This document shows positions 1 through 27,512 of a DNA stretch of 64,000 nt, piece after piece. The position numbers were made by a program, and so were the translations under genes. The stretch is from NCBI GenBank assembly GCA_002104905.1, contig MCFE01000363.1, forward strand, positions 1-64,000, read 5' to 3'. Numbering within the stretch: position 1 is the stretch's first letter; the number at the start of each line of letters is the position of its first letter. The notes under the pieces were generated by a model. The model was not told the DNA's origin. It made no database searches and worked only from the letters and a program-made list of their open reading frames with translations. This DNA comes from Basidiobolus meristosporus CBS 931.73 (taxonomy: Eukaryota; Fungi; Basidiobolomycota).

Positions 1-74
1 TCTTTATTGCATGTTACAAGGATACTATCTTAATTGACAAGCACTTGATATGAAATTCCCAATAAAGTGTCTAG

Positions 75-2672: not shown

Positions 2673-2689
2673 AACCCTAACCCTAACCC
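2673..2689 (+). repeat. Interstitial telomere-like repeat AACCCTAACCCTAACCC
   Basis: Read directly. Preceded by AATAAAG..CTAGAA, as is the hexamer tract at 61-88; lies immediately before LINE copy 2. Confidence 0.65.
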
Positions 2690-4390: not shown

Positions 4391-4395
4391 TGACT

Positions 4396-7300
4396 GGCAG
4401 CTCGCTTTGATATCAGCTGATGATCTCAAGGATTTGTGCTTCCTGTCCGTGTACGTTTCAGTGCAATATCACCTACTCTGAGTGAACAAGGCAGACTGTG
4501 TGTGAAATACGCAACAGTATATAAGGGCAACTGTACCTTTCGACAAACTCAACATACAGTCCACACCCTTGATTCGTTCTCGAGAGCTGCCAGCTTGTTC
4601 AGGAGTAGCACTCATCCGTCTGCCATCTCGCCGCCCAGATGATCGCCCGGCTTTGAAGGGAATGCCTCATTCTACCGCAAACAGATAGGTGATGGTAATG
4701 CATCGACTGGGATCGGCTACGTATTCCTATCCGTACTTGCTACCGGGATTAATGTCATTGCTGAGCACATGTATGTCACCTCAATGCATATTGGCATTTT
4801 ACCTTTTGCACAGTTGTAAGGAGTGATTGGCAGGAAAAGGTGATATCCACTTGAATAAACTAGTCTAATGATGACGATGCAACAAAATATGAGCATGATT
4901 TAATCGGAACAGGTACTCGTCATTAGTAGCCGACGGTGTTATCTGTTGCATCAATATGAGTGTTGTAATATATTAAAGCCTTTACTCATTTCGGTAGATG
5001 AACAGGCGCATTATGCCAAGAAGTGTCCGTCCCATCCAAATATTAAAGGCTTCGGCCAAGTCTTACCATCACACAGGTGGATATCCTATTCAACTTATAT
5101 TCTTGGCTTATCTTGCTATCAATGCATGCATAATCGAAATGGTTGGATGAATTCACGTACTGTGGTGACTGATGATGTCGAATATTCGTCCATCATTGAA
5201 TTGCTGCTTTTTCCCGCATCCCATAAATTTCAGATGGTATTTTCCGCAGCACTGTCAACTGCTTTCTAGTATTCCGGGAAGTTCTCCAAGGCCTTTTGGC
5301 TTTGGACTACCTATTGCCATATATAATGCTTGCGGGCCGGTCATCACGATCTTCACTCGATGAATGAAAATTCCGACTTCCTTTGTTAAGAGTCCAATTG
5401 AACGATCTCATGAGATTTGGTACGCTATTAGCCAATATATTGGATTAGGAATGCCTGGAATTCTAATTACAGGTAAATATGAGTAGCGTGACGACTAAGC
5501 CGTAATATGTCACCAACTCTCCAACATTTCTGAGGTACTAAGGTGTTTAGATATGGTTTGGAAGCTTATCGTATTCGATCGAATAATATTTGGCACATTG
5601 CTACCAGTATTGGTAAACAGAGTCTAAGGGCATGTTGACAACCATCAAAATAGTACTCCATTTAAAGCCTTCCACAATTGCAGATATTTATCACACATTC
5701 AATGTTTTCCCAATTAGCAAGATGCATACTAAAATATTCGATAATAAGGAGAAGTGGTTACCTCCAACTTTTGGCAAATCAATGTATTATAGCAGGGCGC
5801 ATACAAAAGTTCCTTAAGGAATCCAGTAGTACTGAACGCCTGAACTAGCTAGGATAGACCTTGAAATACTAGCATCCTTCGTGGTAAACTAAAATGTACT
5901 GGGTAGCACTGCGATAAAACACTATCTCCAACGGAAATAATGCAGCATTTGTAGACGATGCTCGTAGTCTGCGGTATCAGCAGTGAATTTGTGATGTCAG
6001 AATATCTAACATCACGTGCATTGCAGTCTACCGCCCTTACTAACTTTGTACGTACCGAGGGCATAAACCAGCTAGTGTCAAGAAACATATAAATGAAACT
6101 TATGTTTGGCGATAGTACTGTATGGATACAGACACTTCGCAGTAACTCAGAGTGGGAGGCTGAAACACTCTGTAGTTATTGCTAGTTGGAGTGGGCTGAT
6201 ATTGCTACACCTGATATGCTGAAACATCTGCCAAATCGGGCACATTGAGCCTACCTCGCAGGGAAAATGCCCAGTGTTGGAACTACACGGCAAAAGCTCG
6301 ATTAAACTGAGCTCTGAAATATTGAATCACTCGCTTGGATGCAACAGATAACATCGCCGTTAACTGATGGCGATCACTTGTTCCAAATAAGTCATGCTCA
6401 TATTTTGTTGTATCGTCATCATTAGACTAGTTTATTCAAGTGGAGAACTCCTTTTCCTGCCAATCACTCCTTACAACTGTGCAAAAGGTAAAATGCCAAT
6501 ATGCATTGAGGTGACATACATGTGCTCAGCAATGACATTAATCCCGGTAGCAGGTATGGATGAGAATACATGGCCGATCCCAGTCGATGCATTAACATCA
6601 CCTATCTGTTTGCGGTAGAATGAGGCATTCCCTTCAAAGCCGGGCGATCATCTGGGCGGCGAGATGGCAGACGGATGAGTGCTACTCCTGAACAATCTGG
6701 CAGCTCTCGAGAACGAATCAAGGGTGTGGACTGTATGTTGAGTTTGTCGAAAGGTACAGTTGCCCTTATATACTGTTGCGTATTTCACACACAGTCTGCC
6801 TTGTTCACTCAGAGTAGGTGATATTGCACTGAAACGTTCATGGAACGGAAGCACAAATCCTCGAAATGGACAGCTGATTCCGAAGTGAACTTCCGAATCG
6901 GCAGCATGAGTCATGGCCTCTTCAGTGGTACACACTGCACTTCGTACTAAGCATCCAGCTGGCCAATTCCACCGCGCAACCTTGCACTGAGAATACGAGC
7001 TACAGGTCCTGTAAGAGAAGCACGTGTGGTCGACTCTCCAATTGGTGCTGCAGCATATGCAGTCGTTCGCCCAAATTCACCGTGTTACCTTGCACTGAGC
7101 AAGATGCATGGGTGAACCTAGTTTGGACTAGGATCCATCGGGCTTCTATCTCAAAATCTGGGTGGCTCATCAGATACTTGGTGTCACAATGCCATATATC
7201 CTTATACGGATTCTAGCTATTCCTTCCCGATGCACTAAATCCAAGGGCCACATGAAAGCCAACTTTGGTAACTGGGTGTTAGACCCCAATATTGGTGGTA

Positions 7301-7760
7301 CGCTCTTCAGTCCTCTAGTGCTACTGTTCTGCACCATGTTTGCACCCAAGCTACATAGTCCGTTGATGCCATGAATGTGCATAAAAGGTGTACTGGCACA
7401 AGTGGAATGAGCAACAGACAATCCACATCCTGCTATCCCTTCTGCTGGCGTTCTGGCTGTTCGCACAACATCTGATGGCCCACTATCTATGGTAATGGGT
7501 GCTTTACTGGTGATGCATACGCATTAGTGATCCGCTACTTACGGAGCAATGAGCAAGGTTTACCCCCGGTGCTGAATTAGGGACTATGGAGATGACTTTA
7601 CTCTGTGTTTAATAAGCTAGAATAAAGGAATGGAGGGAGGTCTTTTTGGATCTTTCAGAGAATTATGAATTATTTTTGCCAGGTAGTTATCTTCTCCAGT
7701 GTGGTTTTTCGCATGGAATCCGCCAGTGTATGGTTCCGTGTGTTATTTGGAAGTAGTGTA
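4396..7760 (+). repeat. ~3.35 kb direct repeat, copy 1 (copy 2 at 12161-15510)
   Basis: ORF pairs 4436/12201, 4946/12711, 5172/12937, 5632/13397 and 5849/13614 are all offset by 7765 bp. Sequence is near-identical by eye, with a few small indels. Confidence 0.95.
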
Positions 7761-9183
7761 TATACATGGATGACATAGATATGTGCTAAATCGAACAAGC
7801 AATGTTAATATCACGGGTCTATACAGCAACCTCGCAGTTTGCCTGTTTATTTATACTCTGAAGGTACTATTAGACGCTGTGAACCTGAGAACATACTAAA
7901 GATATTTCTCATACAATGTTGATTGTACAATAAAAAAGTGATGGTATTTCGCATAGATAATTAAGAGCAACAGCAACCAGCACCTCTAGATGGAGTGCCG
8001 CACTAAGATTCAGTGGGGGCATGCTATCCGTCGATCTAGGGTGAAATTGGAAACGATGATTTGACCCGTCATCATTAAGAAGGTTTATTCAGAAGGATAG
8101 TGACTCGCTACATGCCTGCTCATCACATCGATCCTCAATGACTAAAATACAATGCTAATCGGCACATCCCATTAGCAAAGCACCCTATCGGTGGTCCCCG
8201 AGTAGTATCGATTTGCTGCTACATTGAAAGCAAGATGCCAATCATTACAAGTGTGCTCAGACGGTGTATCGGCAGCAATCAGGGCTTTGTCTCCAAGACC
8301 GGGCTATCGCCTGGGCAGAGTCACGGCCAAAGGAAAAAGCCCACTCCTGAACAAACTGGCAGCTCCGGAGAACGAGTCAAGTGTGTGGATTGTATGTTGA
8401 CTATGACCTGAAAGCTGCTTACCCTTATATACTTTGGGCTGTCCTACTCGCGACCAAGTCGATTCTCTCATAGCCCGTCTCATCGCATATGAATCACACG
8501 AACTTCTACGTCTCGATTCTAACTTGCTCAAATGGATTTATTGGTGGACAGCGCCCCACACCTGAAGCTTGGAGAGACTCTCATCACATCGCTTTTGAGC
8601 CACTTCAAGATCCAGATCCCGATAGAAGCTGATAGTATCTAATACGAGAACAAGTCCATTGATCTGTGTGCCATGGATTCAGGTTTGCTACCCTTTAAGT
8701 GGAACCAAGTGAAACTGAAAGCTAATTGGCCGTGGCACTAAACTCTGTAATGAGAAACATATTCACTCATGAAGGTGGTAGAAAATGCGAATAAGTGCCA
8801 TATTTGTAGTTGAAGTTAATTAAGGGATCTTCCCAAAATCTGGATGATTCTTTACAAAGCTGCTTGTCAACTTTGGGTAAGCATGGGTGGTACAGCATTT
8901 CCGAATGTAGCAGCACTCTGTATGTGTAAGCCACTCAGTGCCTATGAGTGCAAGCATTCAGTAGCGGTTTGTTGGCAAGATGGTACTGGGCCTCAATACT
9001 AGTGGACCATTCTTCACTAGTGCTACTGTTGTGGCCGAAACACCGACACAGTTGCAATTTCGCAATTACCATGAATACGTATAAAAGACACGATGTTGGA
9101 AGTTGAAAGCTCAACATACAATCCACATACCGGGGTTCTCCTGTCCGTTTCAATTCAAGCAAGTGAAGTATTGTAAAGTCTGC
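5778..9183 (+). repeat. Left arm of ~3.4 kb inverted repeat (right arm 24134-27512)
   Basis: Reverse complement matches at both ends (AATCAATGTATTA.. at 5778 vs 27512; CAGACTTT.. at 9183 vs 24134). ORFs 5849(-)/27192(+), 6648(-)/26344(+), 7170(-)/25759(+), 8304(-)/24786(+) and 8935(-)/24017(+) correspond. Confidence 0.93.
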
Positions 9184-10351
9184 CCGGCCCTTCTTGGTGG
9201 TTCATTCTCGCTGGTGATTCCGACTATCCTGCATGGTGCTGTTCCGCTGGAGGTTTTCACTGTTGGTACGGCTTCCTTGTTGCTACCTACGTTCTGTGAG
9301 TTGATCACACATCGATATGTGTAATAATAGATTTGTTGTGGCCTTTTCACCATTCCAAGAATTGTGGTTTGGTTGACGTTAATTGATGCTCGCACTTCCT
9401 TGAATAAAACAGACGTGGTAAAAAAACAGTCATAAATTTGCAAACTTGGGCAGGGATAATAGGATGTCGTTCGTAGCATTTTGAGTTACTAACCCACTTA
9501 CTACTGGTATTTTGCAATATCTATGGAATGATGTGTGATATCGTAGGAATCCTTACAACAGTACAAATGGCTGATTTTTACATTTTTGGATTTTCTAATG
9601 GATGCTAAAAATTTACTAAAAATGGCAGCCTACAGGATAGCCACATCTTGTTGAAGGATTACTCGATTTGGTTGATCTTGATCTTTGTTGTCTTTATCCA
9701 CAGCATGAACCTTCAAAGTTGGGGACTACGATTATGAAAATTAAAGCAAACTATTGCAACATGCTGCAATAACAGATTCACTGAAAATTCAACGGCTGCT
9801 GAGAACTCTGATGAGAAATTTCCGTATTTCATACCGTAATACACACCTTAGTCTAATCATGATGCTAGAGTGGATCTCATTAAACAAGCCCCAAAGTACG
9901 ACAAAGACCCTTAGTACACCCCCCAAGGCCACACCTATACGGGCTAACATAAGTTCAAGCCAAACCACGGTAGCACTGAGGTCAATTCAAAACAACTAAT
10001 ACTAATTATGGAAAAACCTGCTTGGCTCAGTAGCACTATAGTATTTATAGAGTTCTTTGTGGACTGCAACACCGGTTAAACCTACCAAGTTACGGTGTCT
10101 ACCTTAGCGCCTTTGAACGTCTGGGGTCTTAGTCATAATCATTATTACGACCATAGTCTAAGCCCGTTACGAGTCAAAGGGATGTCTAGTATGGTAGGCA
10201 TGGATCCGAATTGCCATATTTGGTTTCTCTCCGAAACGCTCTTTACCAAGATATGCCTTCTCGATTTCGATTTTATGCGGTGCCCTGTAATCGTTTATTA
10301 CATTTGCTTATTGACGCAGTTTATCACCATGAAAGCACACAACTCATCTAA

Positions 10352-10717
10352 CAGTCTCTTGTATCTCACGGTACACTTTACATTCTAGAAACCATCAATT
10401 TGCACAAAACCAGATACAGATTTGGGGTTCTAGTCATCTGGTTTGACCATCGCTTACTCCTAAAAGAACTAGTGGCAGCACATCCGGTATTACCATAGTT
10501 AAATTGGTACCACCAAGCTTATTTCAGCCCTTCTAGGTTAGCCAACTAGCTTGAGGTGGTTGGAATGCGATTACCCGTGTCTATTGGCTGCCTACTACTT
10601 AAGAAACTGGAGTCTTCGTGGATTTTAACTCATCGATGAAGCCATTGGCTGGTAAGAAATCGAATCGTAATAACGATAAGATTTCATGCTATTCCGAGAC
10701 CGTACTACTAAACGCGT
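10352..10717 (+). repeat. 366-bp near-perfect inverted repeat tract (partner 15957-16322)
   Basis: I could see only one mismatch between this tract and the reverse complement of 15957-16322; flanks on both sides are much more diverged. Confidence 0.92.
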
Positions 10718-12160
10718 TGCGAACGGTTATCACTGATTCAAACGGCCGTTTCACCATAATAGATAACGTTAATTGAGATTGAACCACCCACATATTTCTA
10801 GAATCAACGCGTGTACATGGGAAGATGAATCTAGACAATAGAACCTCACATAGAGCATCAGCCGATAGTGGTTTGCATAATAGATAGTATACTGAACATT
10901 AAGTTATAAATGCGAAATTTGAATCTAGATGTTTGAGCCGCACTTAGATATCATCCCAGTGCGAACATAGATTACAGATTAAATTAAGCATCACTATCAA
11001 TAATCTAAATATATAACCATGGTATAGGAGATAAAGCTCCATGTCATTTAGTGATGAACTTTCAAATCATGTTCAATGTTATAAAGAAATATTGGAATCG
11101 GTTTACTTTCAAGGCGTTGGTTTCTGGGGCAAGCTACTTTATAGTCGATAGCTCGCCAGTTACAATTAAGCGGCTCCCTCACGGTTTCGCATGAAAAAGT
11201 AGTGATGGCTCTAGACAGCGCTATAAATGTCAATTCCATAATGATTGCTATAAACACTACTATATTGTAATCGCGTGCTTGTTCGCCCTTCACCTTTCTC
11301 CATTGCCCATACACATACTGATTTAAAATAGTAGACCAACTTACACATTGGCAAATTTCATCCCAAAACCCACGCTTCAGCAGATAACCAGTAAGTAACA
11401 AGACTGCAAAATCCCTTGAAAGATCCAAAAGATCACCCCCATTCCTTTATTCTAGCTCATTAAACACAGGGTAAAGTGGCCCCACAGTCCTTAAGTAAGC
11501 ACGGGGGCTAAACCTTGCTCATTGCTCCGTAAGTAGCGGATCACCAATGCGTGTGCATCCCCAGGAAAGCACCCGTTACCATAGATAGTGGGCCATCAGA
11601 TGTTGTGCGAACAGCCAGAATGCCAGCAGAAGGGATAGCAGGATGTGGATTGTCTGTTGCTCATTCCACTTGTGCCAGCACACCTTTTATGCACATTCAT
11701 GGCATCAACGGACTATGTATCTGGTATGCAAATATGGTGTTGAATAGTAGCACTAAGGAACTGTAGAATCTTCCACCAATAACGCGGTCTAGCACAACGC
11801 TACCAAAATAGGCTTTCATGTGGTCTGTTGATCTGGTACACCTTTGAAGAATAATTAGAATTCGTATAGGATATATGGAATAGTGACACCAAATATCTGA
11901 TGAGCCACCCAGATTTTAGGAAGGAAACCAGATTAACATTGCCCGAATATCCTGCTCAGTGAAAAAAAGTACGGTGACAAGAGACGAATAGATTCCAGTG
12001 CTCCAACACCCATTGGGGCATTGTTCACTTAGTTTTCTCTTGCCGGATCTGTAGCACATATTCTCAGTGCAAGGTTGCGTTGTGGAATTGGCTAGCCGAA
12101 TGCTTAGTACGAAGTGCTCTGTGTTCCATTGGAATGACTAAAGATTCGTTTGGCTGGCTC

Positions 12161-15100
12161 GGCAGCTCGCTTTGATATCAGCTGATGATTTCAAGTATTT
12201 GTGCTTCCTCTCCATGTACGTTTCAGTGCAATATCACCTACTCTGAGTGAACAAGGCAGACTGTGTGTGAAATACGCAACAGTATATAAGGGCAACTGTA
12301 CCTTTCGACAAACTCAACATACAGTCCACACCCTTGATTCGTTCTCAAGAGCTGCCAGCTTGTTCAGGAGTAGCACTCATCCGTCTGCCATCTCGCCGCC
12401 CAGATGATCGCCCGGCTTTGAAGGGAATGCCTCATTCTACCGCAAACAGATAGGTGATGGTAATGCATCGACTGGGATCGGCTACGTATTCCTATCCGTA
12501 CTTGCTACCGGGATTAATGTCATTGCTGAGCACATGTATGTCACCTCAATGCATATTGGTATTTTATCTTTTGCACAGTTGTAAGGAGTGATTGGCAGGC
12601 AAAGGTGATATCCACTTGAATAAACTAGTCTAATGATGACGATGCAAAAAAATATGAGCATGATTTAATCGGAACAGGTACTCGTCATTAGTAGCCGACG
12701 GTGTTATCTGTTGCATCAATATGAGTGTTGTAATATATTAAAGCCTTTACTCATTTCGGTAGATGAACAGGCGCATTATGCCAAGAAGTGTCCGTCCCAT
12801 CCAAATATTAAAGGCTTCGGCCAAGTCTTACCATCACACAGGTGGATATCCTATTCAACTTATATTCTTGGCTTATCTTGCTATCGATGCATGCATAATT
12901 GAAATGGTTGGATGAATTCACGTACTGTGGTGACTGATGATGTCGAATATTCGTCCATCATTGAATTGCTGCTTTTTCCCGCATCCCATAAATTTCAGAT
13001 GGTATTTTCCGCAGCACGGTCAACTGCTCTCTAGTATTCCGGGAAGTTTTCCAAGGCCTTTTGGCTTTGGACTACCTATTGCCATATATAATGCTTGCGG
13101 GCCGGTCATCACGATCTTCACTCGATGAATGAAAATTCCGACTTCCTTTGTTAAGAGCTCAATTGAACGATCTCATAAGATTTGGTACGCTATTAGCCAA
13201 TATATTGGATTAGGAATGCCTGGAATTCTAATTACAGGTAAATATGAGTAGCGTGACGACTAAGCCGTAATATGTCACCAACTCTCCAACATTTCTGAGG
13301 TATTAAGGTGTTTAGATATGGTTTGGAAGCTTATCGTATTCGATCGAATAATATTTGGCTCATTGCTACCGGTATTGGTAAACAGAGTCCAAGGGCATGT
13401 TGACAACCATCAAAATAGTACTCCATTTAAAGCCTTCCACAATTGCAGATATTTATCACACATTCAATGTTTTCCCAATTAGCAAGACGCATACTAAAAT
13501 ATTCGATAATAAGGAGAGGTGGTTACCTCCAACTTTTGGCAAATCAATGTATTATAGCAGGGCGCATAGAAAAGTTCCTTAAGGAATCCAGTAGTACTGA
13601 GCGCCTGAACTAGCTAGGATAGACCTTGAAATACTAACATCCTTCGTGGTAAACTAAAAGGTACTGGGTAGCACTGCGATAAAACACTATCTCCAACGGA
13701 AATAATGCAGCATTTGTAGACGATGCTCGTAGTCTGCGGTATCAGCAGTGAATTTGTGATGTCAGAATATCTAGCGTCACGTGCATTGCAGTCTACCGCC
13801 TCAGATACCCTTACTAACTTTGTACGTACCAAGGGCATAAACCAGCTAGTGTCAAGAAACATATAAATGATACTTGTGTTTGGCGATAGCACTGTATGGA
13901 TACAGACACTTTGCAGTAACTCAGAGTGGGAGGCTGAAACACTCCGTAGTTATTGCTAGTTGGAGTGGGCTAATATTGCTACACCTGATATGCTGAAACA
14001 TCTGCCAAATCGGGCACATTGAGCCTACCTCGCAGGGAAAATGCCCGGTGTTGGAACTACACGGCAAAAGCTCGATTAAACTGAGCTCTGAAATATTGAA
14101 TCACTCGCTTGGATGCAACAGATAACATCGCCGTTGACTGATGGCGATCACTTGTTCCGATTAAATCATGCTCATATTTTGTTGTATCGTCATCATTAGA
14201 CTAGTTTATTCAAGTGGAGAACTCCTTTTCCTGCCAATCACTCCTTACAACTGTGCAAAAGGTAAAATGCCAATGTGCATTGAGGTGACATACATGTGCT
14301 CAGCAATGACATTAATCCCGGTAGCAAGTACGGATAGGAGTACGTAGCCGATCCCAGTCGATGCATTAACATCACCTATCTGTTTGCGGTAGAATGAGGC
14401 ATTCCCTTCAAAGCCGGGCGATCATCTGGGCGGCGAGATGGCACACGGATAGGTGCTACTCCTGAACAAGCTGGCAGCTCTTGAGAACGAATCAAGGGTG
14501 TGGACTGTATGTTGAGTTTGTCGAAAGGTACAGTTGCCCTTATATACTGTTGCGTATTTCACACACGGTCTGCCTTGTTCACTCAGAGTAGGTGATATTG
14601 CACTGAAACGTTCATGGAAGGAAGCACAAATCCTCGAAATGGACAGCTGATTCCGAAGTGAACTTCCGAATCGGCAGCATGAGTCATGGCCTCTTCAGTG
14701 GTACACACTGCACTTCGTACTAAGCATCCAGCTGGCCAATTCCACCGCGCAACCTTGCACTGAGAATACGAGCTACAGGTCCTGTAAGAGAAGCACGTGT
14801 GGTCGACTCTCCAATTGGTGCCGCAGCATATGCAGTCGTTCGCCCAAATTCACCGTGTTACCTTGCACTGAGCAAGATGCATGGGTGAACCTAGTTTGGA
14901 CTAGGATCCATCGGGCTTCTATCTCAAAATCTGGGTGTCACAATGCCATATATCCTTATACGGATTCTAGCTATTCCTTCCCGATGCACCAAATCCAAGG
15001 GACACATGAAAGCCAACTTTGGTAACTGGGTGTTAGACCCCAATATTGGTGGTACGCTCTTCAGTCCTCTAGTGCTACTGTTCTGCACCATATTTGCATA

Positions 15101-15510
15101 CCAGATACATAGTCCGTTGATGCCATGAATGTGCATAAAAGGTGTGCTGGCACAAGTGGAATGAGCAACAGACAATCCACATCCTGCTATCCCTTCTGCT
15201 GGCGTTCTGGCTGTTCGCACAACATCTGATGGCCCACTATCTATGGTAACGGGTGCTTTACTGGTGATGCACACGCATTGGTGATCCGCTACTTACGGAG
15301 CAATGAGCAAGGTTTACCCCCGGTGCTGAAGAGGGATTGTGAGACCCCTTTAATATATGTTTAAAGAGCTAGAATAAAGGAATGGAGGGAGATCTTTTGG
15401 ATCTTTCAAAGGATTTTGAATTATTTTTGCCAGGTAGTTATCTTCTCCAGTGTGGTTTTTCGCATGAAATCCGCCAGTGTATGGTTCTGTGTGTTTTTTG
15501 GAAGTAGCAT
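12161..15510 (+). repeat. ~3.35 kb direct repeat, copy 2
   Basis: Begins GGCAGCTCGCTTTGATATCAGCTGATGA as at 4396; similarity fades after GGAAGTAG near 15507. Confidence 0.95.
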
Positions 15511-15528
15511 ATATATATATATATATAT
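15509..15528. repeat. (AT)10 microsatellite
   Basis: Read directly; lies where direct-repeat copy 2 diverges from copy 1. Confidence 0.95.
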
Positions 15529-15956
15529 TTATGAATGACAGAGATATATGCAAAAATCGATCGAGCTATAATATTATAATTGGGCATACCGCAATCATCT
15601 TGAAATATAAACTTGCATCACAACCTTGAACTGCTGTAAGCGGCTCTTTATGTACACATCAAGTAGTAAACAAAGAGCCAAAGTTGGTTGGCCATTGAGT
15701 ATAAAGCAATCCATCAATTTCTATTCACACTTGGAATAAATATCACTTTTGTGTTCAACTTTACTATTAAGAACAGCTACTCAAGTTACCAGCAAAGCAC
15801 TTGTGAAAGTGCTGAGAAGATATCGGAATCTCTAGAACTATTGTTCAAATTCTATTTGTTACTCGGTATGTAGGAAACTCTACTATATGCTAGCTAGACC
15901 TAGGTATTACCTATTAGTGCGAAGTGATACATCAGATCAACGAAATTCCGTTTGTG

Positions 15957-17849: not shown

Positions 17850-18500
17850 GGCACAATAGAGATCCGGTACCACAGTGCCATATATCCATATACAATTTTC
17901 AACCATTCCAAAACGACGTGCTGATCCTAAGGGCGGCGTGATATTCAACATTGGTAGCCTTTATACTGGGACTCGATGCTGGCGTAAAATTTTTCTTTAC
18001 ACTAGTACTACTCTTCAACATCACTTTTGCACACAAGATGCAGAGTACATTGTTGCTGTGAATGCACATAAAAGATGCATTAGCACAAGTGAAATAACTA
18101 ACATACAGCCAACATTCTGCTACCCCTTCAGCCGACGTTCTGCCTGTTCGCTCGACATCTGATGACCTATCTTTTATAGTAACGAGTGCTTTCCGGATGA
18201 TGAATACACATTGGTAATCGGCTGCTTATATAGCAGCTAGGAAAGTTTACTTTCATTGTTGACTGAGGAACTATGGGAACCACTTGTTTGATATGCCCGA
18301 ATGAAGGAATAGGAAGAGTTTTTTTGGATCTTTAAAAGGATTTTGCAGTATTGTTACCCACTAGTTGTCTTCAACAGTGAGCAAGCTTACTTGGAATTTG
18401 CAAGTGTGTGGCTCCATGAACTATTTTGAATCGATATGTTTATAGATCGCAGGGGTGTTTGTAAAAATCGAATCAGCAACAGCAATATAATTCGGTTTAT
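17850..18500 (-). repeat. Diverged module homologous to 7140-7800
   Basis: Collinear similarity: GATTTGGGTGGC, GCCATATATCC, ATAAAAGATG, TAACATACAGCCAACAT core, TTTTTGGATCTTT. Confidence 0.8.
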
Positions 18501-18821
18501 CGCAATCATAGGAGCATTAATATTGGCGTCATATGATTAAATTGCAATAAATGGCTCTTCACGTACAAATAATGAGGTAAACATTTATTTGAAGCTGACC
18601 AGTGAGTGACGCGAAGGCAAAGTAATGATTGATTTGTTTAGCAGCCCTGTATACATATGCGCTTAGGGCATTTGCGGTGGTCTTGCAACGACGTAGCTAC
18701 TGAATTAAGCTTTAGCATGGCCTTATTCGTGAGATAGTAACATTGCATGTATTTTGAAAACAATGAAAAGTATCAGAAATGAATGTATCTTCGCTACATA
18801 CTGTACTGAGGTTCAGCAGAA

Positions 18822-19527
18822 GCATGCTATCCATCGATCTAGTGTGAAATTGGAAACGATGATTTGACCCGTCATCATTAAGAAGGTTTATTCAGAAGGA
18901 TAGTGACTCGCTACATGCCTGCTCATCACATCGAACCTCAATGACTAAAATACAATGCTAATCGGCACATCCCATTAGCAAAGCACCCTATCGGTGGTCC
19001 CCGAGTAGTATCGATTTGCTGCTACATTGAAAGCAAGATGCCAATCATTACAAGCGTGCTCAGACGGTGTATCGGCAGCAATCAGGGCTATCGCCTGGGC
19101 AGAGTCACGGCCGAAGGAAAAAGCCCACTCCTGAACAAACTGGCAGCTCCGGAGAACGAGTCAAGTGTGTGGATTGTATGTTGACTATGACCTGAAAGCT
19201 GCTTACCCTTATATACTTTGGGCTGTCCTACTCGCGACCAAGTCGATTCTCTCATAGCCCGTCTCATCGCATGATCGCTCGCATATGAATCACACGAACT
19301 TCTACGTCTCGATTCTAACTCGCTCAAATGGATTTATTGGTGGACAGCACCCCATACCTGAAGCTTGGAGACACTCTCATCACATCGCTTTTGAGCCACT
19401 TCAAGATCCAGATCCCGATAGAAGCTGATAGTATCTAATACGAGAACAAGCCCATTGATCTGTGTGTCATGGATTCAGGTGTGCTACCGTTTCAGTGAAA
19501 CCAAGTAAAACTAATAGCTAATTGGCC
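18822..19527 (+). repeat. Left ~0.7 kb inverted repeat flanking RdRP (direct copy of 8019-8731)
   Basis: GCATGCTATCC...AATTGGCC; near-identical to 8019-8731 and to the reverse complement of 24586-25260. Confidence 0.93.
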
Positions 19528-20154
19528 CCGACAAAAATTGTCTTCTTAGTGGTCCTTGCTTTATGAAGCGTATTTGACACATGGAAATTTCTTGGAGTGG
19601 AGTCGAACGAAATCCACCTTATGTGGGACTAGAAAGAATTTCCTGAAAAGTGAACTGAATCATATTTTCATTTTTGGTGCTACCTATATATTATATTTAT
19701 AGGCAGTCAAAAATAGTTATGATCCAGTTTGAAGCTAAAGGTGAGTACCGAAATGAATCCATATAACCATCAAACTAATGGCGAATATGTATTATGAAGT
19801 GTAGGAAATACGAGTAGCTAAAAGACTGAGTTACGATGGGTTGTGTTCATTTAAAAATGCCATAAATTGATTGCCTCTTGGGTTGTACGATTTTTTAATT
19901 AGTCAAGCCCGATGGCAGAGCTATTGTCGATTCCAGTTTAGGTTTCAAACAGTAGTCGCACATCTCAGAAGGTGAAATGGTCTCTAATAGTATTGGTTAC
20001 TGTGTATAGTCGAGTCGGACCTACCATAAGTACTGTAGTACTCATTCTGTCCACGGCTTAGAGTTACTCGAATTACAAATGCTGGCTATAAAAGCAATGC
20101 GGAATCGCTTCGTCCACATTTTTGCCTAATTCCTCTCTCTGATTTAACTACTGA

Positions 20155-23100
20155 ATGAAGGTGCTAGCTGTTCAGGTAAACCATACAGATTAATTTATCG
20201 TGAGATTTAATATGTAACAAATCACAGCATAATACCAATGACTGTAGAAGCGAAGATACTCAGACACCATGGTATCCTGGTCCTCTATTATTCAGGAATA
20301 TCGACCCAAGTCGTCTCCAGGAGTTAGGCATTTATATTCAGGGCTTACCAGCTTCTATGAAGGTCACAGATGTGAAGAATTATTTTTCCAAATGGGGCTA
20401 TGTTAACTCGTGCACAGTGATACCAAGGCAAAATCATGTACGAGGTAATGCAGCCGTAGTCAATTTCAAACCACCACCACCTACTCTAGATTTTATGGAT
20501 CAACTATATCACCGTGTGCGTCAAGAGCAGAGAAGCGAAGTTCTCCTTATCGAATTTACTGCCAAAACCGCTGAGCATCTATATCGCCAATTCCAAGGGG
20601 TGTATACGCCATCTGTCTACTACACTGGGTTAGCCTCGCTAGATATGGGCACTAATTTAAACAACAAACAATTCCTGCGCATTTGGGGGCCTTCTAACGG
20701 CTGTCTTATTGAGGTGAACTTGGAAAGAAGATATATATTTTTACAGTTCTGTCACAACGATTATGTCTATCGAATTGGAATTCGATGGGATGAAATCCGG
20801 GCATTAACGTTCGATACTGAACGTGCAAATGTGTGTACTTTATATATACAAACCAACAGTTCACCTTTCCTATGGTGCCGGCACGAGATTCCCGTGGCAA
20901 GCGCCTCTCATGGCAACCGCTGGAGTGAAGAGAACTATTGGCGACGTGTCCCCTACATTAGCGATCCATATTCAACAGACCCAAATTTTACCACTAGAAT
21001 ACGTGTTGGCGATTTCAACGCGTATCGAGTATGTGCTCCATTATTCAATTCATGTGGTGAGCCATTCCAAGTGGCGATAAATATATTGACTCAGTACAGC
21101 AATATGGCAAGCAAATTCAACTCGACAATCCCAAGCGTAATAGATGTATCGACACGACGTATTGAGGACATGTCTTCGCTTCCGTTTGAATTAGTATACA
21201 TTATCCAATGCTTAACTTGTGCGCAAAAGCTTACACCATACAACTTATCAAAGGAGTGGATTGCGTTTATTGGTAATCTGGAGCCATGGATCGCCAAAAA
21301 TTTATTATACCGGATGATGGAAACCAAATGTTTAATCGAAGATCCTTTGAAGTACTCCCAAAATATACTACCGAAACTGAACAGCATGAAAGTAGACCTG
21401 GAAGAAATATCTCAAGAGCGGATGTGGGTTCGTAGGGCTATTGTTACCACCAGCAAAGTCCATCTCTTGCTCCCAACTCTTGAATCATCAAATCGAATTC
21501 TGAGACACTTCTGTCGGTACAAGGATCATTTCCTTCAAGTGACTTTTTCCGATGAGCACAATGAAAAGCTAGGCCCCGATTTAGATGAATACGAAGAGAT
21601 ATTACGTGATATTGAGGAAAAGCTGACATGTGGATTCTACACCGCCAACAGACATTATAGATTCCTTGGATTCTCTTCAACGCAGCTACGCGAACACACC
21701 TGCTGGTTTTTTGCTGATACACCAGATGGCATAGACGTGAAATATATTCGTGAGTGGATGGGTGACTTCAGCGAAATCAAAAGCCCAGCTAGACATGCCG
21801 CACGTATGGGGCAGTGCTTTTCCAATACACGCGCAGTTAAGACCCTTCAAAAAGGTGATATGAAAGAGATGCCGGACATCGCTCGAAATGGATATGTGCT
21901 TTCAGATGGTGTTGGTAAAATTTCCTGGTCGTTGGCAACCGAAATCGCTAGCACATATCACCGGCGGGAAGTTCCCGGCGCCTTCCAGTTTCGTCTCGGT
22001 GGTTACAAAGGAGTTCTTGCTGTTGCCTCTGACAATGAGATGGATGGCTACTCAGTTCATCTGCGCCCGAGCCAGAATAAGTTCAGATCCACTCATACCG
22101 AATTAGAGATTGTCAGAACTGCGGAGTTTATGCCTGCTTATCTCAATCGGCAACTCATTATGCTATTAGTCTCAATGGGTATTCCAGAGGATGTCTTCGT
22201 GCAAATACAGGATGACTATTTGCAGGAAGTGGAGGGCATTACCAGCAATGAGAGATCCGCTTTGAGTATCCTAGCTCTACATATCAATGGAAGTTGGATA
22301 GTCAAGACTCTAAGAGATATGGTCCTTGCGGGATATCTCAGGTTTGGGGATGCTATGACCAAATCCATGCTAAAGCTCTTTCAAATCCAGGTTCTGAGGG
22401 ATACCAAAGAACGTGCTAGGATACCAGTTGAACAGGGCGCCCATTTGATAGGTGTTTTGGACGAAACGAATACTTTGAAAGAAAACCAAGTAGTTATTCG
22501 CTTCACTGACCCACAGGATCCCAGCACAATAAGAAGCTATGTGGGCCCTGCATTGGTTACTCGGAATCCGTATCTGAATCCAGGTGATGTCCACATGGTC
22601 GAGGCGGTCGATATTCCGCATCTTCGTTCTCTTGTAAATTGTATCGTATTCTCTTCTCAAGGTGAGAGAGACTTACCCAGCCAGTGCAATGGAGACCTTG
22701 ATGGGGATACATACATGACAATATGGGACAAACGATTACTGCCATCTCAGAGGAAATTCGTATCCGGTTACAACAAGTGCGAGATTACGGCTGCCCGGAA
22801 GATCACAATTGACGATACAATTAAGTTTTTTATCCATTACGTTGTATCAGACAATGTAGGTGCGATAGCGAATGCTCACTTAGCCTGGGCTGACCAGTCA
22901 CCTTATTACACTCTATCAAATAAGTGTGTATCATTATGCCAGCTTCATTCCAAGGCAGTCAGCTTCATCAAGACTGGAGTTCCCGCAAGGCTCCCTTTTT
23001 CTTTGCGCCCAAAGCTATGGCCGGATTTTATGAACAAGAACCCGAGAAAATCATACATCTCAACCAATGTTCTGGGGAAAATGTATAGAAGTAGTGCTCA

Positions 23101-23602
23101 GAAGTTAAACGCGGCATTAGAGCTATACTCAACATGTACATCTGAGGATGCGCGATTAGACGAGAAACTTCTGGTACCTGGATATGAAGCATACATAGCA
23201 GAGGCCTTAAACCTGAAGCAAGAATACGACATTATGATTCGGGATATCATGAACCAGCATGAAATACAAACAGAGGCTGAGGTAATATCCGGATATATCC
23301 AGAAATTTTCTCATATTGTTAGCCGAAAGAAGGAAAAATTCTTGCTGAAAGAAAGCCTGGGGAATGTTATCAGTGCTATATGGAAAACCTTCCATGATAA
23401 ATTCAATGCCGAGTTTGCTGACGATACCGACAATCACAAAGTGAGTATCAATCGTAAACGAAAAGCCAGTGCCTGGTATTACGTATCGTACAATGATCCG
23501 AATTTAACAGCCAGCGATCCTTTTATGAACGACTCCTCACTCACATCGTTTTCTTGGGTTGTCTGTGATATACTACAATCTATTGCATCAGATATTGAAT
23601 AA
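20155..23602 (+). CDS. Eukaryotic RNA-dependent RNA polymerase (RNAi-type RdRP/RDR family) with N-terminal RRM-like region
   Basis: 1081-aa ORF 20357-23602 with FLQVTFSDE, FLGFSSTQLR, WMGDF..AARMGQCFS, SDGVGKIS, FQFRLGGYKG, YLNRQLI, DLDGD, NAH..AD, PDFM. The frame stays open upstream to 20204 (adds IYIQGLP, RNP2-like). A plausible exon 1 (ATG 20155-20175) plus a 52-nt GT..AG intron (20176-20227) joins in frame; this start is inferred. Confidence 0.95.
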
Positions 23603-24133
23603 AATACAATTCGTCATTAAAGTCTTAATGAACTAAGAATAATCGGCATTGACATTGATTTTTTAGTGGCGAACTGGCAATTATCTTTACTTTGGTGATT
23701 GTGAGCACGAACCTACCTATTAATCAGACCATAATCCCTGTACTAGCCCAAAATGGAGTTGGCAAATTTGGATTTTGGTCAATGCATCAATTGGAATATA
23801 GAGTGGCATAGCTTTGATTGGATGAGGAACCACCGGATGTAGGTCACTATACAATGGAAATTACTTACGATGAAACATCCACAACTCATTGCTAATTGAT
23901 ATGTATATATATATAGGGCTCAAGTATCTATTTCATTAAAGTAAGCATGAGCACACATGTCAACACCTACCAACTTGTAATTGTTGGGTAGTGAATAGGC
24001 CTCTACGAATAGGTTATTGCACACAGTAATTGGCCATAAGCCTATAAAATGTATATTTATCATACAAAGAAGTTACCGAAATCAAAAAAACACCACCATA
24101 GATGATGCAAATGAACCACCAAAGGAGATATGG

Positions 24134-27100
24134 TCAGACTTTATAATACTTCACTTGCTTGAATTGCAACGGACGGGAGAACCCCGGCTTGTGAATTGTA
24201 TGTTGCGCATTCAACTTCCAACGTCATGCCTTTTATACGTATTCATGGTAATTGCGAAATCGCAACTGTGTCGGTGTTTCGGCCACAACAATAGCACTAG
24301 TGAAGAATGGTCCACTAGTATTGAGGCCCAGTACCATCTTGCCAACAAACCGCTACTGAATGCTTGCACTCATAGGCACTGAGTGGCTTACACATACAGA
24401 GCGCTGCTACACTCGGAAATGCTGTACCACCCATGCTTACCCAAAGTTGACAAGCAGCTTTGTAAAGAATCATCCAGATTTTGGGAAGATCCCTTAATTA
24501 ACTTCAACTACAAATATGGCACTTATTCGCATTTTCTACCACCTTCATGAGTGAATATGTTTCTCATTAAAGAGTTAAGTGCCACGGCCAATTAGCTTTC
24601 AGTTTCACTTGGTTCCACTGAAAGGGTAGCACACCTGAATCCATGGCACACAGATCAATGGACTTGTTCTCGTATTAGATACTATCAGCTTCTATCGGGA
24701 TCTGGATCTTGAAGTGGCTCAAAAGCGATGTGATGAGAGTGTCTCCAAGCTTCAGGTGTGGGGTGCTGTCCACCAATAAATCCATTTGAGCAAGTTAGAA
24801 TCGAGACGTAGAAGTTCGTGTGATTCATATGCGAGCGATCATGCGATGAGACGGGCTATGAGAGAATCGACTTGGTCGCGAGTAGGACAGCCCAAAGTAT
24901 ATAAGGGTAAGCAGCTTTCAGGTCATAGTCAACATACAATCCACACACTTGACTCGTTCTCCGGAGCTGCCAGTTTGTTCTGCCCAGGCGATAGCCCTGA
25001 TTGCTGCCGATACACCGTCTGAGCACGCTTGTAATGATTGGCATCTTGCTTTCAATGTAGCAGCAAATCGATACTACTCGGGGACCACCGATAGGGTGCT
25101 TTGCTAATGGGATGTGCCGATTAGCATTGTATTTTAGTCATTGAGGTTCGATGTGATGAGCAGGCATGTAGCGAGTCACTATCCTTCTGAATAAACCTTC
25201 TTAATGATGACGGGTCAAATCATCGTTTCCAATTTCACCCTAGATCGACGGATAGCATGCCCCCACTGAATCTTAGTGTGGCACTCCATCTAGAGGTGCT
25301 GGTTGCTGTTGCTCTTAATTATCTATGCGAAATACCATCACTTTTTTATTGTACAATCAACATTGTATGAGAAATATCTTTAGTATGTTCTCAGGTTCAC
25401 AGCGTCGAATAGTACCTTCAGAGTATAAATAAACAGGCAAACTGCGAGGTTGCTGTATAGACCCGTGATATTAATATTGCTTGTTCGATTTAGCATATAT
25501 CTATGTCATCCATGTATATACACTACTTCCAAATAACACACGGAACCATACACTGGCGGATTTCATGCGAAAAACCACACTGGAGAAGATAACTACCTAG
25601 CAAAAATAATTCATAATTCTCTGAAAGATCCAAAAAGACCTCCCTCCATTCCTTTATTCTAGCTTATTAAACACAGAGTAAAGTCATCTCCATAGTCCCT
25701 AATTCAGCACCGGGGGTAAACCTTGCTCATTGCTCCGTAAGTAGCGGATCACCAATGCGTGTGCATCACCAGGAAAGCACCCGTTACCACAGATAGTGGG
25801 GCATCAGATGTTGTGCGAACAGCCAGAACGCCAGAAGAAGGGATAGCAGGATGTGGATTGTCTGTTGCTCATTCCACTTGTGCCAGCACACCTTTTATGC
25901 GCATTCATGGCATCAACGGACTATGTAGCTTGGGTGCAAACATGGTGCAGAACAGTAGCACTAGAGGACTGAAGAGCGTACCACCAATATTGGGGTCTAA
26001 CACCCAGTTACCAAAGTTGGCTTTCATGTGGCCCTTGGATTTAGTACATCGGGAAGGAATAGCTAGAATCCGTATAAGGATATATGGCATTGTGACACCA
26101 AGTATCTGATGAGCCACCCAGATTTTGAGATAGAAGCCCGATGGATCCTATTCCAAACTAGGTTCACCCATGCATCTTGCTCAGTGCAAGGTAACACGGT
26201 GAATTTGGGCGAACGACTGCATATGCTGCGGCACCAATTGGAGAGTCGACCACACGTGCTTCTCTTACAGGTCCTGTAGCTCGTATTCTCAGTGCAAGGT
26301 TGCGCGGTGGAATTGGCCAGCTGGATGCTTAGTACGAAGTGCAGTGTGTACCACTGAAGAGGCCATGACTCATGCTGCCGATTCGGAGGTTCACTTCGGA
26401 ATCAGCTGTCCATTTCGAGGATTTGTGCTTCCTCTCCATGAACGTTTCAGTGCAATATCACCTCCTCTGAGTGAACGAGGCAGACTGTGTGTGAAATACG
26501 CAACAGTATATAAGGGCAACTGTACCTTTCGACAAACTCAACATACAGTCCACACCCTTGATTCGTTCTCGAGAGCTGCCAGCTTGTTCAGGAGTAGCAC
26601 TCATCCGTCTGCCATCTCGCCGCCCAGATGATCGCCCGGCTTTGAAGGGAATGCCTCATTCTACCGCAAACAGATAGGTGATGGTAATGCATCGACTGGG
26701 ATCGGCTACGTATTCCTATCCGTACTTGCTACCGGGATTAATGTCATTGCTGAGCACATGTATGTCACCTGAATGCACATTAGTATTTTACCTTTTGCAC
26801 AGTTGTAAGGAGTGATTGGCAGGAAAAGGAGTTCTCCACTTGAATAAACTAGTCTAACGATGGCGAAACAACAACATAGGAACATGCTCTAATCGTAACA
26901 TAATGCTTGTCGTTATTCAACGAGGGTGTTATCTGTAGCATCCAAGCGAGTGATTCAACATTTCAGAGCTCAGTTTAATCGAGTTTTCGCCGTGTTGTTC
27001 CAACACCGGGCATTCTCCCTGCGAGGCAGGCTCAATGTGCCCCATTTGGCAGATGTTTCAGCATATCAGGTGTAGCAGTGTCAGCCCCCTCCAACTAGTA

Positions 27101-27512
27101 ATAACTACCGAGTGTTTCAGCCTCCCACTCTGAGTTACTACAAAGTGTCTGTATCCACACAGTACTATCGCCAAACCGAAGTATCATTTATATGTTTCTT
27201 GACACTAGCTGGTTCATGCGCTCGACATGTACACATGTGGTAAGGGTACCCGAGGCGGTATACTGCAATGCACGTGATGTTGGATATTCTGATATCACAA
27301 ATTCACTGCTGATACCGCAGACTACGAGTAACGTCTATAAATTCTGCTTTATTTCCGTTGGAGGTAGTGTTTTATTGCAGTGGTATCCAGTAGCTTTTAG
27401 TTTACCACGAAGGATGTTAGTATTTCAAGATCTATCCTATCATGTTCGGTCGCTCAGTACTCCTGGATTCCTTAAGGAACTTCTGTATGCGCCCTGCTGT
27501 AATACATTGATT
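24134..27512 (-). repeat. Right arm of ~3.4 kb inverted repeat
   Basis: Collinear reverse complement of 5778-9183, with local diverged patches (e.g. ~26860-26940). Confidence 0.93.
24586..25260 (-). repeat. Right ~0.7 kb inverted repeat flanking RdRP
   Basis: Reverse complement of 18822-19527, with a ~31-nt deletion near 24980. Confidence 0.93.

Follow-up and report, generated by a model that had tools for sequence, protein, structure and literature searches.

A nested array of non-coding inverted repeats with convergent promoter-like motifs around an RNA-dependent RNA polymerase gene of Basidiobolus meristosporus

The stretch of DNA analysed here (the window; 64,000 nt) is part of contig MCFE01000363.1 of Basidiobolus meristosporus CBS 931.73, a genome available as a PacBio assembly (PMC7466969). 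A 23-kb array of repeats in which an RNA-dependent RNA polymerase (RdRP) gene is embedded occupies positions 4396-27532 of the window (Table 1). The retroelements to the left of the array, which include RVT_1 matches in two ORFs (112-2226 and 2763-3850), belong to a dispersed family, with 91-96% identical copies at the sampled loci L003 and L004, and stop exactly at the start of the array, cutting short module B1. The retroelement reverse transcriptase ORF returned no database match. To the right (after 27532) lie unique sequence and an ABC transporter gene. The array adjoins ordinary genes.

The RdRP ORF (20357-23602, + strand; 1081 aa, uninterrupted) is the sole long ORF of 4396-27532, as the initial annotation had stated; the next stop-to-stop frame is of 142 aa. 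It encodes an intact cellular RdRP of the plant RDR type, matching the PF05183 profile from position 1 to position 581 of 582 (E = 1.7e-171), and the catalytic loop DLDGD (DxDGD; GDLDGDTYM) can be read in its translation. An RRM, the PF05183 domain and a head domain make up the protein, of which residues 273-1077 matched the RDR-type structures 7w82, 7eu0 and 7roz (E = 1e-118 to 3e-123); Neurospora QDE-1 is only a distant relative (E = 7e-18). The gene is single-copy, its nearest relatives are 49-56% identical (the closest paralogue 56%), and no 1:1 B. ranarum orthologue was found among the matches. The protein is a long-branch, lineage-specific Basidiobolus paralogue. The TATA box of the gene's own promoter is TATAAAAG, at 20087-20094. 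The proposed gene model consists of exon 1 (20155-20175), a 52-nt intron (20176-20227) and exon 2 (20228-23602), which encodes the RRM, RdRP and head domains; the RRM_1 match begins 9 residues ahead of Met 20357, and the RdRP paralogues can be aligned across residues 1-1076 without introns. The database gene model is truncated (726 aa, 21422-23602), and no record of the 1081-aa product was found in independent assemblies or in transcript or read assemblies.

The repeats around this gene resolve to nine copies of one module of 1-1.4 kb, which falls into sub-types Y and Z, and a 1.3-kb spacer, S1, that is present three times. All of the inverted repeats named in the initial annotation are present: 5757-9206 pairs with 27532-24110 (93.6% over 3.47 kb; previously 5778-9183 and 24134-27512), 18805-19527 with 25277-24586 (93% by BLAST, 97.5% without gaps; previously 18822-19527 and 24586-25260) and 17772-18430 with 26193-25527 (68%; previously 17850-18500 and ~25600-26150), while the ~8-kb palindrome extends over 9576-17683, with its centre at 12745-14084. 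In addition, a stretch of 3.4 kb is repeated in direct orientation (4396-7767 and 12161-15518; 96.5% by BLAST, 97.4% without gaps). As the BLAST E-values of the long pairs are 0, none of the repeats is due to chance. An old palindrome holds the RdRP gene in its spacer, with inverted Y Z dimers on both sides of the gene, and module B6 forms the outer portion of the left arm of this palindrome. The complementarity of the inverted arms is extensive (431-3470 nt, 84-97% identity), and cofolding placed 407 of 431 and 678 of 723 nt in inter-arm pairs. The secondary halves of Y and Z are homologous (z = 19.7). Two patches of the segment 9207-11344 (9576-9669 and 10327-10766) reappear inverted at 17589-17683 and 15907-16347; this segment gave no Pfam match, and its fold z-score of -2.4 is not decisive. 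Copy boundaries differ among the units (4396, 5757, 7767, 9206 and 15594), being ragged and without consistent termini. The array contains no tandem repeats, and S1 is not a hidden palindrome, as there is no inverted repeat inside it.

Table 1. Features in and beside the array, with promoter-like motifs, opposed motif pairs and palindrome arms
Feature	Position	Strand	Details
Retroelement context	1..4395	+	two degenerate reverse-transcriptase (LINE-like) copies
Module B1 (Y1)	4396..4979	+	inner 584 bp only; TATA 4516-4527, initiator 4549-4566
Spacer S1, copy 1	4980..6310	+	non-palindromic, non-coding, between convergent primary promoter-like motifs
Module B2 (Y2)	6311..7729	-	primary TATA 6763-6774 (-), initiator 6724-6741 (-)
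B2 secondary promoter-like motif	7369-7387	+	initiator 7411-7428 (+)
Module B3 (Z_I)	7730..9206	-	primary TATA 8422-8433 (-); deep paralogue of Y modules
B3 secondary TATA	9080-9087	+	initiator 9111-9128 (+)
Inter-module segment 1	9207..11344		between convergent secondary promoter-like motifs
Module B4 (Y3)	11345..12744	+	old variant; primary TATA 12281-12292 (+), initiator 12314-12331 (+)
B4 secondary promoter-like motif	11684-11702	-	
Spacer S1, copy 2	12745..14084	+	centre of ~8-kb palindrome
Module B5 (Y4)	14085..15594	-	primary TATA 14537-14548 (-), secondary promoter-like motif 15123-15141 (+)
Inter-module segment 2	15595..17691		partial inverted image of 9207-11344
Module B6 (Y6)	17692..18430	-	old, diverged, ~68% to other Y copies
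Module B7 (Z_IV, partial)	18805..19527	-	primary TATA 19206-19217 (-), directed away from RdRP
RdRP gene	20087..23602	+	own TATA and proposed exon 1, intron, exon 2
Module B8 (Z_III)	24110..25549	+	primary TATA 24896-24907 (+), directed away from RdRP
B8 secondary promoter-like motif	24230-24248	-	initiator 24189-24206 (-)
Module B9 (Y5)	25550..26942	+	secondary promoter-like motif 25892-25910 (-), primary TATA 26505-26516 (+)
Spacer S1, copy 3	26943..27532	-	partial, inverted; right end of array
Convergent pair	4516> <6774		
Convergent pair	7380> <8433		
Convergent pair	9080> <11702		
Convergent pair	12281> <14548		
Convergent pair	24896> <25910		
Opposed pair	20087> <24248		RdRP's own promoter and module promoter-like motif
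Palindrome arms	11345-12744 / 15480-14085	inverted	84%
Palindrome arms	10327-10766 / 16347-15907	inverted	93%
Palindrome arms	9576-9669 / 17683-17589	inverted	73%

The repeats are non-coding. No Pfam match was obtained from the ten longest open frames of the array, and no remnants of a reverse transcriptase, integrase or tyrosine recombinase were found between the repeats, RVT_1 being confined to the neighbouring element at 1-4395. The repeats were rejected as RdRP pseudogenes or remnants, since TBLASTN queries comprising the RdRP plus 17 homologues and a search of all 591 array open frames with the RdRP HMM were both negative. The longest open frames of Y and S1 were discarded as candidate genes: the 142-aa frame of Y had no match among 5.8 billion protein sequences, and the 138-aa frame of S1 had just a spurious match to a bacterial repeat protein among 1.84 billion representatives. 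This S1 frame, the only conserved one of the spacer, has a dN/dS of 0.6-0.7 between copies, substitutions in the Y arms lack codon periodicity, and neither Rfam (gathering and E<=1) nor ARAGORN detected an RNA gene in the array. BLASTN, TBLASTX and HMM searches for the modules and spacers found no similarity in the remaining 36 kb of the window, in the RdRP gene or in ~80 kb of other Basidiobolus DNA from five loci (~41 kb of it from the same genome). That the modules are local to this locus is weakly established, since this is the extent of the sampling. The proposal that the locus suppresses a paralogous gene family elsewhere gains no support from modules that are non-coding and unlike anything else sampled, and because no target in trans was found, any siRNAs would match the array alone.

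Every complete module carries two back-to-back core promoter-like motifs, ~600-650 bp apart and both directed outward; these account for what had been noted as convergent module pairs of ~0.7 kb. Each motif consists of a TATA box and, 31 nt on, an initiator-like YCAACAKACARTCCACAY, the 31-nt spacing being common to all three promoter sub-types, and there are 14 such TATA-31 nt-initiator motifs in total. Exact AGTATATAAGGG occurs 8 times (0.24 expected), initiator-like matches 14 times (0.16 expected) and the secondary CCATGAATRYGYATAAAAG 6 times (0.02 expected). Of the 16 TATAWAAG sites of the window, 13 fall in 4396-27532, and these correspond to 10 module promoter motifs, two sites in the diverged Y6 and the RdRP's own TATA. 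Because the motifs within each module point outward, adjacent modules form convergent pairs (Table 1). The primary motif of B1 is directed rightwards into S1, and the secondary motif of B8 is directed antisense into the 3' end of the RdRP gene, the stop codon of which ends at 23602. A bacterial-type promoter and terminator scan was, as expected, uninformative.

The promoter-like motifs are the slowest-evolving portions of the modules. Y and Z cannot be aligned apart from their homologous promoter segments, within which the TATA box is identical at 12 of 12 positions and the segment from the initiator to +60 at 53 of 60, compared with 22 of 50 upstream; the interval that separates the TATA 12-mer from the initiator keeps its length of 21 nt, with 7 of 21 positions identical. 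Y3 is 96-99% identical to the other Y copies in two promoter segments and 73% identical in the spacer between them. These two separate comparisons single out the same segments. Motif, spacing and conservation are the grounds for reading the module motifs as putative promoters. They are not copies of the RdRP promoter, local alignments with which were no better than shuffles (z = -0.9 to 2.1). The conserved leader forms less structure than its shuffled versions do (z = +2.1), and the 33-nt leader motif had no match in a metagenome scan.

The copies are separated by 88-228 substitutions and 5-8 gap openings per pair (units and Y arms), and being thus distinguished by substitutions, they are very unlikely to be a product of assembly. 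Module B7 (Z_IV) contains a 97% patch inside an otherwise old, 68% copy, and identity falls off gradually at the edges of the patch, which suggests gene conversion. The CpG observed/expected ratio steps sharply at ~4396, from 0.05 in the adjoining retroelements to 0.72 in the array; it is 0.03-0.33 in dispersed repeats at 52-59 kb, and CpG depletion marks all the dispersed repeats seen in this genome. The array has therefore escaped the decay typical of the dispersed transposons of this genome. RIP-like or methylation-driven decay of the array was rejected on its substitution spectrum, which is roughly symmetric (ts/tv 1.1-4.7), with CpG transitions enriched only 1.2-2.1x. As 0.05 and 0.72 are found in equally repetitive DNA, the repeat-decay process discriminates among repeat classes, a difference that is informative for the study of genome defence in this group independently of whether the array is transcribed.

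All three B. meristosporus RdRP paralogues adjoin repeat-rich DNA. At the P0005 locus there is a separate local array of direct and inverted repeats, RdRP fragments among them, and downstream of the gene on the B. ranarum P0003 contig lies an RdRP fragment of 523 bp in inverted orientation. Local inverted repeats are thus present at three of five Basidiobolus RdRP loci and were seen nowhere in the remaining genic DNA that was sampled. None of the array modules occurs at the paralogue loci, and the closest full-length B. ranarum homologue is located in gene-dense, repeat-free DNA; the polymerase therefore needs no such setting. The adjacency of RdRP and array described here is a single observation of one gene and one array.

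We tentatively favour a reading in which the array was built locally and homogenised in patches, and in which its convergent promoters would generate dsRNA in cis that feeds RNAi. Successive inverted and direct segmental duplications would have laid down the nine modules and three S1 copies, and gene conversion would later have homogenised the array in patches; an intact plant-RDR-type RdRP paralogue occupies the spacer of the oldest palindrome. Were the motifs to fire, transcripts from the convergent pairs would overlap, and those crossing S1 would also fold back on the 431-nt arms; the resulting dsRNA, some of it with a strand antisense to the RdRP message, could enter the RNAi pathway, and the RdRP itself may be affected. 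Such dsRNA output is plausible because 14 conserved motifs are arranged in convergent pairs and the inner arms would pair over 407 of 431 nt in a transcript that crossed both. Against this reading, gene conversion and not selection could have produced the high-identity patches, the RdRP's own promoter is unrelated to those of the modules, no target in trans was found in the DNA sampled, and the closest full-length B. ranarum homologue has a repeat-free setting. The physical part of the coupling first proposed, an RNAi-type RdRP within the spacer of an old palindrome amid nested inverted repeats, stands, and the three specific ideas attached to it (suppressor, selfish element and hairpin loop) gain no support. 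An RdRP mRNA in a hairpin loop is unsupported, since the motifs of the flanking arms (19206-19217, -, and 24896-24907, +) both point away from the gene and the arms would give identical, not complementary, RNAs.

A possible account, if a somewhat less probable one, is that the array is inert structural debris, formed by inverted and direct segmental duplication where a transposon island borders it, with the RdRP between the copies by accident and the TATA-initiator motifs being relics of a decayed divergent gene pair or extinct element that have stayed similar through conversion only. The ragged, non-coincident copy ends are typical of segmental duplication, and the gradual decay of identity at patch edges is as gene conversion predicts; the absence of coding capacity, target or homologue, the unrelated RdRP and module promoters, and the plain genic setting of the B. 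ranarum homologue also fit. However, conversion alone would hardly produce the Y-Z footprint, in which the TATA box, the 31-nt spacing and the +1 to +60 segment are kept; the two separate comparisons pick out matching segments, and local inverted repeats recur at three of five Basidiobolus RdRP loci.

It is unlikely that the array is a transposon nest, created by repeated insertion, also into itself, of a non-autonomous foldback or long-TIR DNA transposon or a DIRS-like element. The units in which S1 separates Y modules of opposite orientation do resemble an element with long inverted termini and inward-facing promoters, and dispersed retroelements adjoin the array. However, the array has no transposase, reverse transcriptase or recombinase, its copy ends vary between units, no copy was found in the remaining 36 kb of the window, at the five other loci (~80 kb) or in the metagenome scan, and its CpG content is normal, unlike that of the dispersed repeats. 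It is very improbable that the RdRP is the cargo of a large TIR element, mobile or selfish, of which the flanking inverted modules are part: inverted Y Z dimers do bracket the gene and its paralogues all lie beside repeat-rich DNA, but the RdRP is single-copy with a closest paralogue 56% identical, the modules are absent from the paralogue loci, the arms are old (68%) and asymmetric, and the repeat ends lack consistent termini, so that the selfish RNAi element initially suggested is also unsupported. An assembly artefact such as chimeric palindromic long reads is the least credible reading, for although long-read assemblies are known to go wrong by inverted duplication, the substitutions between copies amount to 2.6-16%, with very few indels and position-specific patterns, and there are at least three distinct copies with different flanks.

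A further, speculative and rather improbable extension of the favoured reading is that the RdRP genes of Basidiobolus are coupled to dsRNA sources close by, as an RNAi feedback or priming circuit linked to the polymerase gene. The array would then be selectively maintained, exempt from CpG decay and a source of dsRNA in cis, with one promoter antisense to the RdRP, and the inverted RdRP fragments at P0005 and B. ranarum P0003 would serve the same role. We know of no described fungal precedent for an RdRP gene linked to a local dsRNA source, and none for such a circuit was found in the literature searched. If transcribed as predicted, the array would be a compact natural source of dsRNA beside, and partly antisense to, a silencing-amplifying polymerase, in an early-diverging lineage (Zoopagomycota) in which RNAi is essentially unstudied, and would open to direct test the question of whether RNAi genes are themselves under RNAi control in fungi. 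If silent, it would be a well-resolved example of nested palindrome formation and gene conversion.

Endogenous hairpin or inverted-repeat siRNA loci include the Drosophila hpRNA genes, the IR71-type loci of Arabidopsis and maize Mu killer. Like the array, these carry, on a single chromosome, long inverted repeats of high complementarity, which could form hundreds of bp of dsRNA in a transcript that crosses both arms. Their sequences come from identifiable genes or transposons, which they also target, whereas the arms of the array are non-coding and match nothing else sampled; small RNAs are documented at these loci, whereas those of the array are putative. To our knowledge none of them has an RdRP gene linked to it, and an RdRP is lacking altogether in Drosophila. 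Overlapping sense and antisense RNA from convergent transcription is the source of dsRNA at the disiRNA loci of Neurospora and at the centromeric dg/dh repeats of fission yeast, which work with Rdp1. These share with the array a repeated, partly palindromic layout of opposed promoters, which in the array are predicted, as is transcription, from motifs. In both of those systems the RdRP gene and the repeats are unlinked, unlike those described here, and the fission yeast repeats are centromeric and heterochromatic, whereas the array is gene-like in its CpG content and neighbours ordinary genes. The polymerase resembles the RDR-alpha RdRPs (plant RDR1/2/6) in its RRM, PF05183 and head domains and DLDGD loop, and differs from them as a lineage-specific Basidiobolus long branch, the activity of which is predicted. 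The ampliconic palindromes of primate Y chromosomes are maintained by arm-to-arm gene conversion; both they and the array have inverted arms around a unique, gene-holding spacer, and near-identical stretches within older arms that decay gradually at the tract edges. The arms of the array are far shorter and non-coding, and they are nested and have been duplicated several times; unlike those of the primate palindromes, their homogenised tracts coincide with promoter-like motifs.

Self-comparison of the window recovered every repeat that the initial annotation had listed, with slightly wider limits, and the array was found to consist of one module in nine copies together with a 1.3-kb spacer, S1. 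The two sub-types of the module, Y and Z, are deep paralogues: comparison of their secondary halves gave z = 19.7, and their primary halves are 74.5% identical over 150 bp. The same annotation had described the RdRP as the only long ORF of the array, which was borne out, as the other open frames within 4396-27532 are of 142 codons or fewer.

Features of the RdRP array, its surroundings and two other Basidiobolus RdRP loci
Feature	Position	Strand	Remarks
Degenerate reverse-transcriptase elements (two)	1-4395		left of array
Y copies	4396-4979, 6311-7729, 11345-12744 (Y3), 14085-15594, 25550-26942
Y6	17692-18430		diverged Y copy
Z copies	7730-9206, 18805-19527, 24110-25549 (Z_III)
Inverted pair	5757-9206 / 27532-24110		3.47 kb, 93.6%; self-comparison
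Inverted pair	18805-19527 / 25277-24586		self-comparison
Inverted pair	17772-18430 / 26193-25527		68%; self-comparison
Direct copy	4396-7767 / 12161-15518		3.4 kb; self-comparison
Palindrome	9576-17683		~8 kb; self-comparison
Convergent motif pairs across S1	4516> <6774, 12281> <14548
Convergent motif pairs across Y-Z junctions	7380> <8433, 24896> <25910
Convergent motif pair across 2.1-kb segment	9080> <11702
RdRP TATA, TATAAAAG	20087	+	upstream sequence
Proposed RdRP exon 1	20155-20175	+	7 codons; upstream sequence
Proposed RdRP intron	between exons 1 and 2	+	52 nt, GT-AG; upstream sequence
Proposed RdRP exon 2	from 20228	+	in-frame; upstream sequence
Z_III secondary motif	TATA 24230-24237, initiator 24189-24206	-	about 600 nt past RdRP stop codon
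ABC transporter, P-type ATPase and arrestin-domain protein genes	right of array		ordinary genes
P0005 array	L004:400-8200 (B. meristosporus MCFE01000018.1)		includes 600-bp inverted pair at 98.5%
RdRP pseudogene fragments in P0005 array	L004 2872-3533, 6357-6767	-, +	both orientations
Inverted 523-bp RdRP pair, P0003	L005:227-749, 3232-3752		about aa 282-449, window-RdRP numbering

Y and Z share just two short elements. The primary element comprises AGTATATAAGGG, TCAACATACARTCCACAC 31 nt past the first T of the TATA, and a leader of ~60 nt, and is present in eight exact copies (0.24 expected). The secondary element comprises CCATGAATRYGYATAAAAG and, again at a distance of 31 nt, the initiator-like motif in a variant form, and is present in six copies (0.02 expected). 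Between Y and Z, 22/50 positions are identical in the 50 nt upstream of the TATA, 12/12 in the TATA 12-mer, 7/21 in the 21-nt spacer, the length of which is conserved, and 53/60 from the initiator to +60. A TATA-initiator core promoter followed by a short, conserved leader would be expected to leave such a footprint. The comparison of Y3 with the other Y copies, which is independent of this footprint, singles out the same segments: identity is 96-99% in 11561-11720 and 12231-12620, and 73% in the intervening 510 bp.

In all complete modules the two motifs are arranged back to back and directed outwards, at a distance of about 600-650 bp. Neighbouring motifs therefore face one another, because the modules alternate in orientation, and the RdRP TATA faces the opposed secondary motif of Z_III. 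The sequence data establish the anatomy of the array, the absence of coding capacity, the constraint on its promoter-like motifs and its escape from CpG decay; firing of the motifs is inferred. If these promoter-like motifs fire, convergent and fold-back transcripts could form dsRNA; a hypothetical transcript from 12314 to 14515 would include two arms with 407 of 431 positions able to pair. The dsRNA might, in turn, bear on the RdRP. That the array is a transcribed source of dsRNA is a reasonable proposition, to which we give slightly less than an even chance; a real functional circuit between array and polymerase is improbable. The placement of the RdRP message in a hairpin loop is not favoured, since the flanking-arm motifs nearest the gene (19217 and 24896) are directed away from it.

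The main rival explanation is an inert segmental duplication, in which relic promoters have been homogenised by conversion. The palindrome around the RdRP shows a pattern like that of Y3: its left arm is old, with 68% identity in Y6, and a 723-bp patch of this arm that carries the primary motif matches its partners at 97%. At the patch edges identity falls off gradually, the signature of gene conversion. Inert duplication is a credible alternative, albeit one that we doubt. In the 8-kb palindrome, the arms share a 440-bp patch (10327-10766 / 15907-16347) at 93-97% identity between unalignable flanks; it lacks promoter motifs, ORFs and RNA-family matches, and its folding signal is mild (z = -2.4).

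The array repeats are not detectably coding. No Pfam family was found in their open frames, the longest Y frame had no homologue in a set of 5.8 billion protein sequences and the longest S1 frame none in a set of 1.84 billion protein representatives. The sole frame open in all copies has a dN/dS of 0.6-0.7, and codon periodicity is absent. An origin as RdRP remnants was rejected, as no RdRP similarity was found in the repeats; nor were known RNA genes matched or tandem repeats found. Comparison of the repeats with the remainder of the window and with five other Basidiobolus loci revealed no similarity, whether in DNA or in translation. The retroelement at 1-4395 and a ~340-bp family (52.8-57.8 kb), on the other hand, recur at both other B. 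meristosporus RdRP loci.

The observed/expected CpG ratio is 0.05 in the retroelements at 1-4395 and 0.03-0.33 in the dispersed-repeat block at 52-59 kb, compared with 0.72 in the array, 0.67 in flanking intergenic DNA and 0.82-0.91 in genes, and the step at 4396 is sharp. Among array copies, CpG transitions exceed other C/G transitions in frequency by a factor of only 1.2-2.1. The paralogue loci show the same split: dispersed repeats are CpG-free and the local array upstream of P0005 is not. Whatever removes CpG from dispersed repeats in this genome has spared the array, although it is old enough for its copies to differ by 3-32%. A transposon nest fits the data poorly and is an unlikely origin for the array.

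The LINE-like dispersed retroelements (window 1-4395, L003:1-6500 and L004:12500-18492) have CpG ratios of 0.0-0.1 and strong strand asymmetry (GC skew of about -0.3 for 1-2000 and of -0.23 for 2001-4000), and adjoin, at sharp boundaries, genes and local repeats with ratios of 0.6-1.0. This suggests repeat-specific, CpG-targeted decay in this Zoopagomycota genome, either methylation-driven deamination or RIP-like. The ~340-bp family occurs in both orientations (52793-53125, 54119-54470, 57084-57435 and 57442-57794; one pair 99% identical) within the CpG-depleted, AT-rich block at 52-59 kb, and also flanks RdRP paralogues (L003 4243-4592, 6062-6376 and 13247-13609; L004 12985-13317). A CpG-depleted retroelement block lies within 0.3-16 kb of all three B. 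meristosporus RdRP paralogues, which sit at borders between transposon islands and genic DNA.

Local inverted repeats were found at three of five RdRP loci (window, P0005 and P0003) and nowhere in the other genic DNA covered (roughly 60 kb), an association that is suggestive in this small sample of five loci. Upstream of its RdRP, P0005 has a separate array of repeats (~0.4-0.9 kb, direct and inverted), with normal CpG content like that of the window array. On the B. ranarum P0003 contig (JASJQH010008822.1), an inverted copy of 523 bp from the 5' coding region of the gene (88% identical) follows the stop codon at a distance of about 550 bp, and a read-through transcript would form an RdRP-derived hairpin. 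No repeats occur at the B. ranarum P0002 locus, where the DNA is of the ordinary gene-dense kind, and the repeats at the P0004 locus are dispersed ~340-bp copies only.

The RdRP ORF (20357-23602) encodes 1081 residues; the protein matches PF05183 over its full length (E 1.7e-171), and the DLDGD catalytic loop can be seen in the translation. The RRM match starts nine residues ahead of the first in-frame Met, and we infer from the upstream sequence a short first exon, an intron and an in-frame second exon. The 726-aa public model, which starts at 21422 and lacks about 400 N-terminal residues including the RRM, is therefore truncated. Residues 1-1076 are matched by all Basidiobolus paralogues as single intronless blocks; the P0004 and P0005 models look truncated likewise, because TBLASTN aligns these residues upstream of their annotated starts. 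The window RdRP is a long-branch paralogue inside a Basidiobolus-specific clade, with no 1:1 orthologue from B. ranarum among the database matches in the tree. A mobile RdRP cassette is a poor fit to the data and very improbable.

The least probable alternative, an assembly artefact, is hardly credible and also fits poorly: copy pairs (units and Y arms) differ by 88-228 substitutions and only 5-8 gap openings, so they are diverged genomic copies rather than errors in long reads or an artefactual palindrome of the assembly. PacBio was used for the B. meristosporus CBS 931.73 genome (PMC7466969); placement on MCFE01000363.1 (GCA_002104905.1) was made via the database gene model, and window and record share the same coordinates. 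Literature searches aimed at a locus of this kind, in Basidiobolus or other fungi, found nothing. Plant RDR2-type enzymes are the nearest solved relatives of the polymerase (E about 1e-120), and QDE-1 is distant (E 7e-18).
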